Of a DNA stretch of 64,000 nt, positions 7,325 through 15,261 are shown piece after piece. The DNA comes from Adineta vaga (taxonomy: Eukaryota; Animalia; Rotifera), in NCBI GenBank assembly GCA_021613535.1, contig CP075492.1:12648001-12712000 (forward strand), written 5' to 3'. Within the stretch, counting starts at the first letter, position 1. Each line of letters begins with the position of its first letter. The notes under the pieces are model-generated. The model worked only from the letters and a program-made list of their open reading frames with translations, ran no database searches and was not told the origin of the DNA. The position numbers were made by a program, and so were the translations under genes.

Positions 7325-9725
7325 ATGCATTACGAATCATATCAAATGTCTACGACAATTACGAGTCGTCGTAATCAGCACGGCGCAGGCGGTGGAATCG
7401 ATGGTTATACTGCTCAAGATCATATCGATGCAAGTAATGCACAATTAAATTCAACACGAGCTCAACGTATTCGAGCAGCAATATTTCCTGAAATAGCTGA
7501 TGATAATAGTTCGAATAATGTACCATGTTCACCTATATCTCCAACGCAATTTCGTACTGGTCAAGCAACAGCTGTACAAAAACTATCTGAACCATCACAA
7601 CTATTAAAAAATGCTGTTAATGATATCATTAATTACAAAGAAGATGCAGAAATTACTGAAAAAGCACTTCCCGAACTTATTCGTTTATTAAATGATAATG
7701 ATCCACTTATTGCTGGACAAGCAGCATTAGTTTTACATACTTTAGCAAGAAAAGAAGCCAGTCGAATTGTATTATCCAGTTCACATATAGTACAAGCATT
7801 AATTCAAGCCATATCAAATCCACGTGCTACAGATGAAACACGTCGAGATGTTGCAGGAGTATTATATTGTCTTTCTCAATATAAACAAGGTCTTCTAATG
7901 ATTTTTAAAGCAGGTGGTATTCCAGTACTTGTTAAATTACTCGAGTAAATATCATTTAATTTGATTTGCGAAATTCCTCAATTGTTTATCTTATTTTAGT
8001 TCATGCAATGAATTTGTTGTTAATCATGCATTATCTACATTACATAATTTATTATTATATATTGAACAAGCAAAATGTGAAGTTATTTGTTGTGGTGGTG
8101 GTCAAAAAATGATTTGTTTATTAAATAATCCCAATCCAAAATTTCTTGCCATTCTTATCGATTGTCTCTATATGTTAGCATTCCATAATGAAGATATGAA
8201 ATTACTTATTGAATCAAGTAATGGTTCACAACAATTATTGCGAATTTTAGATATGACAAATTATGAGAAATTAGCTTGGACAACAACACGTCTTCTTCGA
8301 GTTTTATCTGCTAGTCCAACAATAAAAACAAATATGGTTGTGAAAAATACTGTACAAATCTTAGAAAAACAATTGTATCAACCAATTAGTTTACGTGTTC
8401 AACAGAATTGTTTACTGATTCTTCGTAATCTATCTGATCAAGCTGTTCAATTAGTTCGTAGATTACTTATCTTTTGTTTTAATTCTTAAGTGAAATTGTT
8501 TTATTTAGGAAAATCTTGATTCACTCATTCGTTTACTCATCGATCTTTTACGATCCAGTGATTTTATTACTGTTACATGTTCAGCTGGTATTCTTTCGAA
8601 TTTAACATGTAATCATCAATATAATAAAGCATTTGTTGTACAATCTGATGGTGTACATGCTTTGATCAATACATTACTTCAAGGTCATAATAAAGAAGAA
8701 CTTATTGAACCAACGATTTGTACATTAAGACATGTAACAAATCGACATTCACATGCAAATGAAGCACAAAATATCATTCGAAGTATGCATGGATATGTAC
8801 CTATTATTGATTTACTGAATCCAACATTATATTCTTGGCCAATAATTAAATCAACAATAAGTTTAATAAGAAATTTAGGTTTATCAAAAGAAAATCTACC
8901 CGCCTTACGTGAAGCAAATGCCGTAGAAAAATTAGTACAAATACTTATTCAAAGTTATGATCAATTAGAGCATCAAACAGCTCATAAACAATTCAATGAT
9001 AATTGTATTCCTATGAATGATATTATTGAAGGTTCTATTTGTGCATTACATGTTCTTGCAAAAGATCCACAAAGTCGACAGATGATAAGAAATTTAGATT
9101 CAATACCATTATTTGTTCAAGTAAGAACATGTCGAAGAGAACGAATAAAGAACGAAAGTTTTTTTTTTCCCGATTAGTGTCTTCGTGCACCAACAAATAT
9201 ACCAATTCAACGTGCAACAACAGGTGTTCTATGTGAATTAGTTAATGATCGAACATGTGTAGAATGTATTGAACAACAAAATTGTACACAAATCTTAACA
9301 GATTTACTTAAATCAAATGATGAGGGTGTTGGTTAGTTGAATGAGTTGTTTTGTTTTTTTCTTCATGATAAAAAAGAAACGAATTTCTTGATCGTATTTC
9401 ATAGCAACATGTGCAGCTGCGATTTTATTCCGTTTGTCAGATGATAAACCATGCAATGATGGTGTGACAACATTTTATCGTGAAGAACATGGTGTTAAAA
9501 ATGTAAATATTTTATTCTTATTAAAACATTTACGAATCGTCTTCTTTTTAGCATTATCAACCGAAACCTGATCCTTATGCACGATCTTTTCGACGAACAC
9601 CACCACCAATGCATGATGCACCTATTATTAGTTATTACACATCGGAAAGTTCACCTGTTAGTGGTTTAATCGATAATCCCAATTGTCAAGGAGGAGGAGG
9701 TGCTTGGCTTGATAGTGATCTGTGA
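7325..9725 (+). CDS. CTNNB1: Beta-catenin/armadillo paralog A (adhesion-type features)
   Basis: TRAQRIRAAIFPE, VQKLSEPSQLLKNAVNDIINYKEDAEITEKALPELIRLLND, GILSNLTCNHQYNK, ICTLRHVTNRH, EGVATCAAAILFRLSDDK and C-terminal AWLDSDL* align with vertebrate beta-catenin (TRAQRVRAAMFPE ... AWFDTDL). Six coding exons. Confidence 0.93.
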
Positions 9726-9960
9726 AAACATTGCTTTTTCAAAATCGAAATATTTATACGTAGATAGATAGTTTTTATATATTATATACTTATATCTCAG
9801 GGATTTAGGTATTTATTTTAATCGATCTAATTATTTATTCATTTAGTTTTCAATCTCAGACAGATATATTTATATTTGCTCAAAACATTTTTAGTTTTTT
9901 TTTATCTAATAAAATTTCGTATTATTGCAGATCATTGAATTCTATTGATAATACATCATC

Positions 9961-10921
9961 ATGGCTCGATCGAAATGTTTCTTGTATGATAACGTGTTAT
10001 CTCAATTTGAATAAAACAACTAAGTTATTCTTCTTTGTTTTGTCATTTAGCGATGTTAATGTTGATGATAAACCATTGGGACGAATTTTATTTCTCGTAA
10101 GTCAATTGAAATATTATTTATAATGGCGATATTCTGTTTTTGTTTTCTTTTCAATTAGCTCTATAATGATGTTGTACCTAAGACAGCAGGTATGAAGATA
10201 AAACGAAATGTTAAACTGAAAGATTTGATTTTGAACTATAGAAAATTTTCGTGCTCTCTGTACGGGTGAACGAGGTTATGGATATAAAGATTCAACTTTT
10301 CATCGAGTAATTCCTCAATTTATGTTGCAAGGTGGTGATTTTGAACGACAGTAAATTAATATTGTTTTCTAAGAATTATTTATTGAAATTATGTCATCTA
10401 TTTTAGTAATGGTACTGGTGGATATAGGTAAGTAAGATTCCGATGATATAATGATAAACTCTTAATTATTGAATTAATTAGTATTTATGGAGGTAAATTT
10501 GCCGATGAAAAGTATGTAGTTTTAAATATGATTAAGTGAAAGAATATTATGTTGTTGTATATCATTAGTTTTCAACTTAAACATACAAAAGAAGGTTTAC
10601 TTTCGATGGCTAATGCTGGCAAAAATACGAATGGTATTGATTTCTTTTCTATTGCAAAAGAAAACGTGTCGGACATTTTCATTTAAAATTTAGGTTCACA
10701 ATTCTTTGTTACCACTGTTCAAACACCGTGGCTTGATGGTAAACATGTATGTATAGCGAGATATACTTCGTTTTTTTTTAATATTTTCTTATTCATAGGT
10801 TGTCTTTGGTGAAGTTACGGATGGTATGGATATTGTTCGTAAAATCGAAGCTTTAGGTTCACAATCAGGCAAAACACAAAAACGTATTACAATTGCTGCT
10901 TGTGGTGAATTAGATCGTTAA
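9961..10921 (+). CDS. Cyclophilin A-type peptidyl-prolyl isomerase, copy 1 (8 introns)
   Basis: Spliced: [132 protein letters not shown]...CGELDR*. Confidence 0.95.
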
Positions 10922-11351
10922 AGATCATGCTCAATTTTGACTCATTCTTCAAATTATTCTCGCATATGCATGTTTTTTTACTCACCTTCAGTTTCATATA
11001 TAATGAGTATGATGATGCTTTATAGTGTTACCTAGATCGCGTGTTAGTAGAAGAAAGTGAATGATTGATAACCCTGTTACGTACACATCGTTATTATTGA
11101 TTATGTTTAGATGAAATTTTAAACAATAAAGATAGCAAACGTTTTTCTTTTTCTCAATTGAATCCATTTGATCAATGAACATGTCAAATAAAATCTTGAT
11201 AGCATATTAGTTCAATGATTAAAAAAAATCTTTCATTCTCGGAAGAGATGATGAATATTTCCTGACGTGAATCTCGTTGTTTCCTGACGATAGATGGCAT
11301 TAAACTCATAGTAATTGCGTTTAATTCATGAAGTCATTTCAAATAGATGAC

Positions 11352-11404
11352 TTCGTATGATTTTTCAAATGAAAAAAATAAAAAAATAAAAAAAATCATA
11401 CGAA
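11352..11404. repeat. 14-bp perfect inverted repeat with A-rich 25-nt spacer
   Basis: TTCGTATGATTTTT (11352-11365) and AAAAATCATACGAA (11391-11404). Confidence 0.7.
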
Positions 11405-11757
11405 TGATTTTTACGATTTAAATAAAATAGAGAGGACACAATGTTAACAAGTTAGATAATTATTCTTTTCATTGGTTAAGAACAAACAACGCTGGCTACA
11501 TATCGACATCCGAACAGACAAAGAACGACCGCCGTGTCGGTCGTTTCTTGTTCTTCATCTCGTTTCCATTTTCTACTTTTTTTCACTCGGCTTCATCACA
11601 AACGCACACATCTAACAAATTTAGGTAAGAATAATGAACGCATACCGTAATGCATTTCTCGAGCACATAATAAAAGAGAAGAGAGAAAAACGCACTAATA
11701 GAATAACGAACATCTATCATTTTATTCTTGCACTTTCTTTTTAACCAGATAGTAATC

Positions 11758-14041
11758 ATGGATTACCCAACAAATAATCGGTCACATCCACCACCACCGC
11801 CACCGATGCATCATCAAATGCCACCTCATCCTATGCATCATCCTCAACATCCACTTCTATCAAATCAATTACAACCAATTAATCCTGAAACACATACATC
11901 GATGTGGCTTGATGATCCCTATAATGTTTCTAATGCATCCGCATCACAACGTGATTCTGGATTTAATTCTCGACCAGCTTCATTGCGTAGTATAGATTCA
12001 GCAGTAACAAACACTACTGGTCCAATTCATCATGGACCAGCTACACCTGTTGGTTATGAACAACTTCCACCTCCACCACCATTACCACCCGATCATGAAA
12101 ATATACATCCACAATATGCTGAAATGCAATCAGCACCTGTTCCACCTTCACGACCGGATCCTAATCAAGTCATAGCTGAACTATTAACTTTATTAATGGA
12201 AGATGATCCTGTTATTGTTCGTGAAGCAATTACTGTTACACAAATGTTAGTAAAAGAAGGTGGTGAAGCTCGGTCAGAAGTTATCCGTAATCGTGACGTA
12301 AGATTTCAATTGAATTCACTTATTTGTTAGAAACATCACTTCTTTTTTTTTTGTTAGTTAATTGTTGCTCTTTTGGAAAGTTTTTCAAAAGACGTTGGTG
12401 ATGGTAAAATTATCTATGCACTCGCTAGTTTGTTTCATTCACTTTCTCAACAACAAGAAGGTCTTCGAGCGATACTTGAATGTGGTGGAATTCCACGATT
12501 GATTCAAATCCTCGAGTAAGCGATATCCTTGCATTCTATTTTATATGTCTTATTCTAATTTTAGTTCACCTGATAATATCGTGAATTTTGTTATCACAAC
12601 TTTACATAATTTTCTTATTGTTCTTCAAGAACAATCCGCTAATGAAATCGATCGTGCCAATGGTACACATAGTTTTATTAATTTACTTCAAAGTACTAGT
12701 GAGAAATTGTTAACATTAGTATCTGATTGTCTACTTAAAATGTCCAGTTATAATTTAAATTCGAAATTATTCATTCAAAATAGTGAAGAATGTGTTCAAC
12801 GTCTTCTCTATATATTTGATACATCAAAATATGATAAATTATTATTAACTATATCGAAATTATTTCCCATTATATCATCAGGAAATGAAATCATTAAAAG
12901 AGTATTTTTACAATTCAATGCATTGAGTATATTAGAAAAACAAATTAAAACAACGAAAAGTATTCGAATAAGACATAATTGTTTAATTGCATTAAGAAAT
13001 ATATCTGATCAAGCAACACGAATGGTAAGAAACATCTAACATGAGAGATCTAGTGAAGCGAATGAAATATCCATCAGATTTAGAACTATTCGATGAGTGA
13101 TTTCGAAGAAAAAAGAAACTGATTGTTTTCTTATATTTAGCGTGATGTGGATTCATTAATACAACAATTAACAGGAATTTTAGTAACCGATGATCAACAA
13201 TCCGTCTTATGTTCATTAGGAATTTTAAGTAATTTAACAGCAGACAATCGAACAAATAAAAGTTTATTAGTGAAATTAAATGGTGTACAAGGTTTAATGC
13301 AAAGATTAATGATGAATGCCGATGGAAATGATGATATAATTGAAGGAGCTGTAAGTGAATTTGCTTTTTTGTCTTTTCTACTTGTAAAACGTATTTTTGT
13401 TTTACGTTTTAGTTATGTACTCTTCGACATGTTACTGCTCGTCATGATTTTGAGAACGAAGCTCGTGAAGCAATTCGAAAATCTTATGGAATTGGAAATA
13501 TAATTAAATTATTACGCGATAAAAACTTTAAAGAACATTGGGGAATAATTAAAGCAACAGTTGGATTAATAAAAAATCTTGCTCTATCACCTTCAATTAT
13601 TCCGCAACTATGCGAACAAAATGCGATTCGAAAATTGATTGAATTATTGATCAATATTGATCGTGAACGAATGAAACTTTACGAAGAAAATAAACATCAA
13701 TATTTGCATCAATTTGATGTGATGATTGAACATATTCTTGGAGCATTGAATAATTTGGCGAAAGATTTATCATGTAAAACGATTATTAAAGATACGAATG
13801 TTATTTCAATCTTTGTTCGCGTAAGTTTGATGAAGATTTTGTTTCGATTTGATTTGATTTTTTCTTGAAATTTTAGTATTCACATCTATCGACTTGTTCA
13901 CTACAACAAATCTCGAGTAATTTATTGAAAGAATTAAATATCGATCGTGATCGAATACAATCCAATGATTTATCATCTCATCAACAAGCATTTAATAATA
14001 ATAATAATACTCTGATCGATTCTCGTCATAATCGTCAGTAG
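11758..14041 (+). CDS. CTNNB1: Beta-catenin/armadillo paralog B (phosphodegron present, C-terminally truncated)
   Basis: N-terminal Pro/His-rich region with RDSGFNSRPASLRS. ARM motifs CGGIPRLIQIL, VITTLHNFL, NCLIALRNISD, GILSNLTADNRTNK, LCTLRHVTARH, WGIIKATVGLIKNLAL. Last exon 13877-14041 ends ...LLKELNIDR...HNRQ*. A 5'UTR intron lies at about 11626-11748. Confidence 0.9.
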
Positions 14042-14401
14042 TAACCGAAAATCTCTCTGTTTAAATACGAATATTAATTATTTCCTAGTCATCTGTTATC
14101 TCCCACAATTTTTTTTCTCTTTGAGTTTACAATTCTCTAAATGTGGTAGTCTCTATCTCTGTTTTTCTCTTATCAATCGGCCTATTGTCAGATGTTGTTT
14201 TGTGTATGTATTTTTTTCTTTATATGTGCTTCCTTCGATACATATATATATATATATAAATGTATAAATATTGTGCAATGGACTTGGTGTCAGTTTTTCT
14301 GTTGTAATTTTTCCTCGTTAATTAATTTGGTGTTTTCACCATATTGATCATGCCATACTATGTTCTAGATTTTTACCACTTTTCAACAAACCGATTCAAA
14401 T

Positions 14402-15261
14402 ATGTCTGGTGCCAATGTTTTCTTCGATTGTGCCGTTGATGGCAAACCACTTGGTCGTATCACATTCAAAGTAAATAGATTAAATTTGTATTTCGATCGA
14501 TACTCATTCATTCTTTCCTCTTTTTATTTTATAGCTCTATGATGATGTTGTACCAAAAACAACCGGTATGTTAAACTAGAAAAGACATGTACTTGATTGT
14601 AGAGATGATTTCTTTTCTCTGTTTTCAGCCAATTTCCGAGCTTTATGCACAGGCGAAAAAGGTTTCGGTTATGAAGGAAGCTCATTCCATCGTGTCATTC
14701 CTCAATTTATGCTTCAAGGTAATGAATGATCTTGATAATTATTTTTCAATGAATCTACTGTTCTATTTCTATAGGTGGTGATTTCACACGACAGTAAGTA
14801 AAGACTTCTATGACAGAAACATTTAATTATTACATTATTTCATTCTCTCTTCTTTTCTCTCCATCCAATAGCAATGGTACAGGTGGTAAAAGGTAAATCG
14901 ATACTTTATTTGTAAAATTACCTACTCTCTTTCATTTAGTATCTATGGTGAAAAATTCGCCGATGAAAACTTTAAACTCAAACACACCAAACCCGGTCTT
15001 TTATCTATGGCTAATGCTGGTCCAAACACCAACGGTTCCCAATTCTTCATTACAACTGTTGTAACATCATGGCTCGATGGCAAACATGTAAGATCGTGCG
15101 GAAAGAAATTTTGTTGATTATGCTCTTTTTTCTGTTTCCTAAAGGTTGTCTTCGGTGAAGTTGTTGATGGTATGGATTTTGTCAAGGAAATTGAAGGCTT
15201 AGGCTCACAATCTGGAACACCAAAAAAGAAAATTACAATTACCAAATCTGGTACCCTCTAA
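14402..15261 (+). CDS. Cyclophilin A-type peptidyl-prolyl isomerase, copy 2 (6 introns)
   Basis: Spliced: [135 protein letters not shown]...KSGTL*. Confidence 0.96.

Follow-up and report, generated by a model that had tools for sequence, protein, structure and literature searches.

What does a beta-catenin contribute to Wnt signalling when it has kept the signal for its own destruction and has lost everything beyond its eleventh armadillo (ARM) repeat? The question is raised by beta-catenin B, a gene on the forward strand of a 64,000-nucleotide stretch of the genome of the bdelloid rotifer Adineta vaga (G000:C3:12648001-12712000, here called the window), which is gene-dense, has about 30% G+C and contains introns of 50-125 nucleotides (nt). 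An earlier note on this DNA had proposed that B is a degron-controlled competitive inhibitor of TCF and that the activating beta-catenin is encoded elsewhere. We find that the truncation is real and shared by all sampled bdelloids, and that the genome holds no beta-catenin locus combining a degron with a C-terminal transactivation domain (CTD). On balance we lean, by a little, towards B-type proteins being the Wnt-responsive partner of TCF themselves, with an output that would not depend on the CTD, rather than inhibitors of the planarian kind.

The identity of B was established exon by exon, while full-length searches and fold prediction were made through two orthologs, P0007 from Didymodactylos carnosus and P0135 from A. 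ricciae; the joined model of B served in local scripts only (frame check, non-synonymous to synonymous rate ratio or dN/dS, blastp and trees). Exons 3, 4 and 5 matched solved chains of Catenin beta-1 with E = 6e-16, 4e-9 and 6e-22, respectively (HMMER), and this ARM core, together with a DSGxxS degron, identifies B as a member of the beta-catenin/Armadillo family. The same alignments bear out what had been claimed for the residues that contact TCF: the equivalents of K312 ('nsKlfi' on 'esKlii', exon 3), K435 ('tnKsll' on 'knKmmv', exon 4), and R469/H470 and K508 ('lctlRHvt' and 'hwgiiKatvgli', exon 5) are all kept. Judged by eye, so are the ARM1 equivalents of L156, L159, D164 and L178.

Regulation by the destruction complex would depend on the degron, which, together with its surrounding residues, is identical in B and in its ohnolog B' on chromosome 6, even though the two genes are saturated at silent sites. 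The Pro/His/Gln-rich N-terminus of B is likewise conserved, with dN/dS of 0.17 over residues 1-60, and the only homolog of exon 1 in the genome is that of B' (72% identity). The Ser/Thr ladder that follows the degron is one step shorter than the canonical one. An ungapped count puts the last degron Ser of B at position 44, which agrees with the earlier view that the fourth Ser lies one residue early, whereas in the MAFFT alignment the canonical S45 'SL' site is taken by the Ser of PASL and the T41 step falls in a deletion of 4-5 residues, an arrangement that keeps the n+4 priming spacing to S37. The shift by one residue therefore stands as a count and falls as an alignment.

Where exactly does the protein end? 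Human ARM11 covers residues 594-636, ARM12 637-666, helix C 667-683 and the CTD 684-781 (PMC7776579). The border between exons 5 and 6 of B (...FVR/Y) is common to the upstream paralog A (...FVQ/C), and since the next exon of A aligns to human residues 609-651, the border corresponds to Q601/L602. Exon 6 of B reads YSHLSTCSLQQISSNLLKEL, then NIDRDR...NNNNN...IDSRHNRQ and the stop, which falls 54 codons past the Q601-equivalent border, i.e. inside ARM11; ARM12, helix C, the CTD and the PDZ ligand are all absent. Within this exon, CSLQQISSNLLKEL is the counterpart of ARM11 helix 2 and the third helix is degenerate, such that the description of B as ending after ARM11 is right by the human numbering while the repeat itself is not intact. 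Searches with the last exon gave no match in PDB (E <= 10) and only sub-threshold noise in Pfam. For the A. ricciae ortholog P0135 (90% identical; 42-sequence alignment), AlphaFold predicts a continuous ARM solenoid with a local confidence score (pLDDT) >90 to about residue 600 and <50 over the last 19 residues. The Asn-rich tail, whose ending IDSRH[IN]RQ is conserved from Adineta to Rotaria, is not junk.

An end of this sort could in principle be an artefact of missed exons, of a mis-modelled 3' end or of a decaying duplicate, and B indeed lies downstream in a tandem duplication of [beta-catenin, cyclophilin], with a last exon that has no detectable family match. The transcripts argue otherwise. 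Spliced RNA contigs over positions 9000-14999, taken from four runs (X1, X3, X5 and X6) of three studies, show every intron junction of B with GT..AG ends, including the 56-nt intron between exons 5 and 6. The contigs cover the last exon without a gap over 13877-14198, up to a simple repeat that was skipped and breaks them, and the length of the X6 contig fits an unspliced run-through to a poly(A) site at about 14369, some 330 nt after the stop and 33 nt before cyclophilin-2. No splice joint leaving this exon, and no alternative 3' splicing, was seen in the contigs of the four runs, so the further 3' exons whose discovery would have undone the earlier note did not appear. The 360 nt between the stop and the start codon of cyclophilin-2, checked in three frames, contain no ARM12- or helix C-like frame or coding remnant, and the six coding exons join into a single open frame of 646 codons with one terminal stop. 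The 3' end of B is confirmed by transcripts, with the proviso that contigs can miss rare isoforms; as far as contigs allow, an artefact is already refuted, and with the conservation described below we regard it as highly improbable.

Two features of this 3' region are worth recording in their own right. In run X5 an in-frame TAA insertion after 13992 adds one Asn to the AAT run at 13978-13992, and among bdelloid B orthologs the Asn run varies from about 2 to 8 residues in length. The 3' untranslated region (UTR) and intergenic sequence at 14042-14401 also shares long exact blocks with B' (L008:5765-6101, minus strand), such as TTGTCAGATGTTGT, ATATTGTGCAATGGAC and, at the poly(A) site, TTCTAGATT; between the two coding sequences the synonymous divergence is 0.77. 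These blocks look like conserved regulatory elements of the 3' UTR or parts of a cyclophilin promoter.

How widely the truncation is shared was assessed with a profile of exon 5 (B and B') against 1.84 billion representatives, followed by a word search with Didymodactylos P0007. This recovered 31 B-type proteins, the B of the window included, which represent at least nine named bdelloid taxa as well as environmental transcripts. They come from A. vaga (B and B'), A. ricciae, A. steineri, Rotaria socialis, R. sordida, two more Rotaria species, Didymodactylos carnosus and transcript-sized environmental contigs. All 31 stop 23-57 residues past the FVR border, all lack the alpha-catenin motif R[AS]QR[VI]R AA[MI]FPE before ARM1, and every N-terminally complete member carries DSG[FI][NH]S. 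The endings are characteristic of each class: proteins of the B' class always finish in ELN[IV][DEN], most members of the B class in IDSRH[IN]RQ(Q) after an Asn run of variable length, and the Didymodactylos protein in ...KVLDFLKQ, which reaches the first helix of ARM12. That the same early stop occurs in so many proteins from three genera, several of them from transcript-sized contigs, again speaks against an artefact, as does the pattern of substitution in an intact frame: B and B' differ with a synonymous divergence (dS) of 0.77 and dN/dS of 0.24 overall; restricted to the 23 last-exon codons that both genes share, the ratio is 0.26.

In quick maximum-likelihood trees the B-type clade received 100% support (SH-aLRT, an approximate likelihood-ratio test), and the split between B and B' was placed before the divergence of Adineta and Rotaria; the placement of long branches, i.e. 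of paralog C and the acanthocephalans, is unsafe in these trees. Taken together, the shared early stop, the dN/dS values and the tree point to a truncation that is old, stable and under purifying selection. A beta-catenin of the acanthocephalan Pomphorhynchus laevis (P0024, KAI0986709.1) carries the degron and the alpha-catenin motif together, and that of Neoechinorhynchus agilis, also an acanthocephalan, ends in WFDTDL; on this evidence the A/B split may be younger than the separation of bdelloids from acanthocephalans, a point that the trees do not resolve. The P. laevis gene model stops 13 residues after ARM12, without helix C or a tail: either the loss of the C-terminus may be older within Syndermata or this gene model may have been cut short.

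Central to the interpretation is what else the genome encodes. Searches of the whole A. vaga assembly (100.8 Mb, six contigs) consistently returned five beta-catenin loci: A and B on C3, A' and B' on C6, and C on C2. The same five were found with exon 5 of B, with the 204-residue ARM7-11 exon of A (E <= 1) and with a canonical beta-catenin of 797 residues. Queries specific to either end divided them, with the degron exon and exon 6 of B each finding B and B' only, and the ARM12/helix C exon of A finding A and A' only. No locus with degron and CTD together exists in the whole assembly, and here the earlier note was not upheld: the activating beta-catenin that it expected elsewhere, a third full-length paralog with both degron and transactivation domain, did not emerge, as paralog C has neither.

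Of the two A-types of the genome, A lacks a degron and has the alpha-catenin motif and ARM12, its helix C is degenerate and it ends in AWLDSDL; A' has the alpha-catenin motif, a complete helix C (MKKRLSQDVTSALY) and the ending AAWFDTDL, and no DSG in its N-terminus. The A-types of other bdelloids also carry the alpha-catenin motif, begin with M[ED]YE[ST]Y as A and A' do, and are equally without a degron. Within A (9405-9725) the core of helix C has been lost, with PCNDGVTTFYREEH standing where A' and other bdelloid A-types have PYDMKKRLSQDVTSALYRDEH, and its tail is shorter than that of A'; A. steineri has a matching 'A2' class. Paralog C, an intact frame of 519 codons in seven exons, consists of ARM repeats only, beginning just before ARM1 and stopping 50 residues beyond the border that corresponds to Q601/L602; it has neither degron nor alpha-catenin motif, and ARM12, helix C and tail are missing as well. 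Its nearest relatives are the B-type proteins, at about 35% identity, and its branch in the trees is very long. It keeps K435, R469/H470 and K508, while K312 is apparently lost.

These findings bring us back to the question of what B does. Because B and B' are the only proteins with a degron, the destruction complex would act on them alone, through a canonical site, and we infer that they form the Wnt-regulated pool and the Wnt-responsive partner of TCF, that is, the signalling half of a beta-catenin gene pair present throughout the sampled bdelloids. If B and B' are that partner, their output at TCF must be independent of the CTD, and could run through co-activators on ARM1, through the conserved Pro/His/Gln-rich N-terminus or through displacement of a co-repressor. 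SYS-1, a nematode co-activator without a CTD, would by analogy be a precedent for such an output.

A number of points weigh against this role for B. Our literature search found no papers on rotifer beta-catenin, hence no functional data, and in vertebrates deletion of the C-terminus alone already weakens signalling. That A has no degron is read from gene models with a conserved start. Both A-types have, judged by eye, retained the K312, K435, R469/H470 and K508 equivalents in addition to a CTD, and could act as activators. D164A combined with deltaC is tabulated as 'adhesion preserved, signalling lost' (PMC7776579), and planarian beta-cat3/4, which have the same architecture as B, inhibit TCF reporters (PMC5643146).

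The last of these points is the core of an alternative that we find unlikely but worth serious attention, namely that B is a Wnt-stabilised dominant-negative which occupies TCF without C-terminal co-activators and competes with an activator, here only the degron-less A or A'. The planarian precedent invoked for it was accurately described: beta-cat3/4 still have the GSK3 sites and no longer have a CTD, and they bind TCF as well as beta-TrCP and inhibit TOPflash (PMC5643146). The modules missing from B would suit such a competitor, as would the complete helix C and tail of A' and the contact residues of both A-types. However, planarians have a canonical beta-cat1 alongside their inhibitors, and A. 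vaga has none. With no locus uniting degron and CTD, the competitor model requires a Wnt-stabilised inhibitor of constitutively stable A or A', and Wnt would stabilise only an inhibitor, which inverts the logic of the pathway. Furthermore, both ohnologs have been kept with an invariant degron across bdelloids, which fits a core transducer better, although it is compatible with a modulator.

Any role at TCF also depends on the TCF proteins themselves. The genome has four TCF/LEF loci with an HMG box, the signature YPGWSARDNY and a CRARF C-clamp, and DEVKVF.CEKHE[ED]D, found in an upstream open reading frame (ORF), is similar to DELIxFKDE, the motif that binds beta-catenin. Counting against a partnership with TCF, Pfam found no CTNNB1_binding match on two candidate TCF N-terminal ORFs, at L031:4021-4374 and L030:4878-5159, and a six-frame genome search returned nothing usable for CTNNB1_binding (PF08347) and a hit below cut-off for BCL9 (PF11502; E = 0.82), this being a weak search with prokaryotic control genomes from which absence cannot be claimed. 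The unconfirmed N-terminal binding domain of TCF is one argument for placing B mainly outside TCF transcription, where, under the control of its degron, it could scaffold or sequester Axin, APC or cadherin tails, or direct the localisation of TCF in the manner of nematode WRM-1. The K312 and K435 buttons also serve binding to cadherin and APC (PMC7776579), and what is left of B without the alpha-catenin motif and the C-terminus is an ARM groove whose half-life is regulated. On the other hand, the residues kept are those at which TCF/LEF binding has been mapped (K312E, K435 and K508A, for example; PMC7776579), the TCF gene is present in four copies, and nothing positive favours a role elsewhere, which we therefore consider distinctly improbable.

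Beyond the role of B as the Wnt-responsive partner of TCF, a broader proposal can be made tentatively: that canonical Wnt signalling in bdelloids possibly runs via a beta-catenin without ARM12, helix C and CTD, either with transactivation shifted to the N-terminal side or to the displacement of co-repressors, or as an inverted pathway. If true, the first version would mean that bdelloids arrived independently at a second solution like that of SYS-1, one in which the classical degron survives; in the inverted version, A or A' would be the constitutively stable activator, and its competitor is what Wnt would stabilise. Since A. vaga is culturable and has a complete genome, experiments could address the question directly.

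Table 1. Coordinates of the beta-catenin and cyclophilin genes in the window, and of related loci elsewhere in the assembly
Feature	Position	Strand	Remarks
Beta-catenin A	7325-9725	+	Identical to UJR10620.1; 3' exon joints in RNA run X6
Cyclophilin-1	~10050-10920	+	Between beta-catenins A and B
Beta-catenin B, 5' UTR exon	11502-11622	+	Joint 11622/11747, GT..AG, in X1 and X5
Beta-catenin B, coding region	11758-14041	+	Six coding exons, 646 amino acids
B exon 1	11747-12297	+	ATG 11758; Pro/His/Gln-rich N-terminus, MWLDDPY motif, degron, start of ARM1
B degron	11953-11991	+	DSGFNSRPASLRS, B residues 66-78, aligned to canonical DSGIxS
B exon 2	12358-12515	+	ARM1-2; joints 12297/12358 and 12515/12565 in X1, X3, X5
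B exon 3	12565-13024	+	ARM3-6; K312 equivalent at 12758-12775
B exon 4	13141-13350	+	ARM7-8; K435 equivalent at 13252-13269; RNA joints
B exon 5	13413-13820	+	ARM8-11 helix 1; R469/H470 and K508 equivalents; ends ...ISIFVR; 70% identical to B'
B exon 6, coding part	13877-14041	+	ARM11 helix 2 remnant 13895-13936, tail 13937-14038, stop 14039-14041
B 3' UTR	14042-14369	+	Contigs unbroken to 14198; X6 poly(A) loose end at 14369
Cyclophilin-2	14402-15261	+	ATG 14402; from ORFs; next gene after B, limits the space 3' of B
Paralog C	G000:C2:13337554-13339462 (L010:2555-4463)	+	Seven exons, intact 519-codon frame
TCF/LEF loci	G000:C3:5844715, C3:5817488, C6:10997531, C6:11052073 (L026-L031)		Four loci

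The neighbourhood of B adds a historical dimension (Table 1). On the minus strand of chromosome 6 the order A', cyclophilin, B', cyclophilin is the same as in the window, and this common order on both chromosomes implies that the tandem pair predates the bdelloid genome duplication. A database model from A. steineri (P0162; 853 residues, named peptidylprolyl isomerase) joins an A-type beta-catenin to the downstream cyclophilin; the fusion is an annotation artefact, yet it confirms the synteny of the two genes in another species. The transcript of cyclophilin-2 has its 5' loose end at 14367, abutting the poly(A) site of B. In run X5 the contigs of both cyclophilin genes (9958 and 14367) open with a common non-genomic leader ending in CGCCGACCACGCCACGTAT(G), which could be a library adaptor or a trans-spliced leader. 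Word depth of the contigs is far higher over cyclophilin-2 than over cyclophilin-1 in X3 and X5, contig depth being a poor measure of expression.

With human CTNNB1, B shares the DSGxxS degron, the ARM core and the equivalents of K312, K435, R469/H470 and K508, with its Q601 border common to paralog A; it differs by the absence of the alpha-catenin motif and of ARM12, helix C, the CTD and the PDZ ligand, and by a Ser ladder that is shortened after S37. C-terminally shortened or weakened forms that dampen TCF reporter output are known from Drosophila Neural Armadillo and vertebrate plakoglobin (PMC5643146). Neural Armadillo, however, is a splice isoform of the single arm gene, whereas B is a separate gene, and plakoglobin, unlike B, has ARM12 and a tail.

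A division of labour between adhesion and signalling paralogs is known already from flatworms and nematodes, as are beta-catenins without a CTD that act as inhibitors (planarians) or as an activator (SYS-1). Like B, planarian Smed-beta-catenin-3 and -4 originated by gene duplication and kept GSK3/beta-TrCP sites and the ARM residues that bind TCF, Axin and APC (PMC5643146), and in planarians, as in A. vaga, a sister paralog of the adhesion type carries the alpha-catenin motif and a PDZ ligand. B thus resembles them in keeping degron and TCF residues and losing the CTD, but planarians retain beta-catenin-1, with degron and CTD, as the target that beta-cat3/4 inhibit, and A. vaga has no such coexisting signalling beta-catenin. 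The B-type is also cut further back, inside ARM11, and its clade stands alone in our trees, which hold one flatworm beta-catenin (Macrostomum) and no flatworm beta-cat3/4, so that orthology with the latter is not shown.

In C. elegans, too, beta-catenin functions are divided among paralogs (HMP-2, BAR-1, WRM-1 and SYS-1). HMP-2 is the adhesion paralog, and its solved chains were the weakest matches to the exons of B. SYS-1 lacks a CTD and is nevertheless a co-activator of TCF/POP-1, with activation mapped to the N-terminal domain (NTD) and R1-R4; unlike B, it has 12 ARM repeats and regulatory domains beyond the NTD (bioRxiv 10.1101/2021.12.26.473689). B in turn has a canonical degron and only about 11 repeats, and the two arose independently, in rotifers and nematodes. 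Bdelloids would be a third, independent case of this division, in which the degron-bearing paralogs lost everything after ARM11 and the CTD-bearing paralogs lost the degron.

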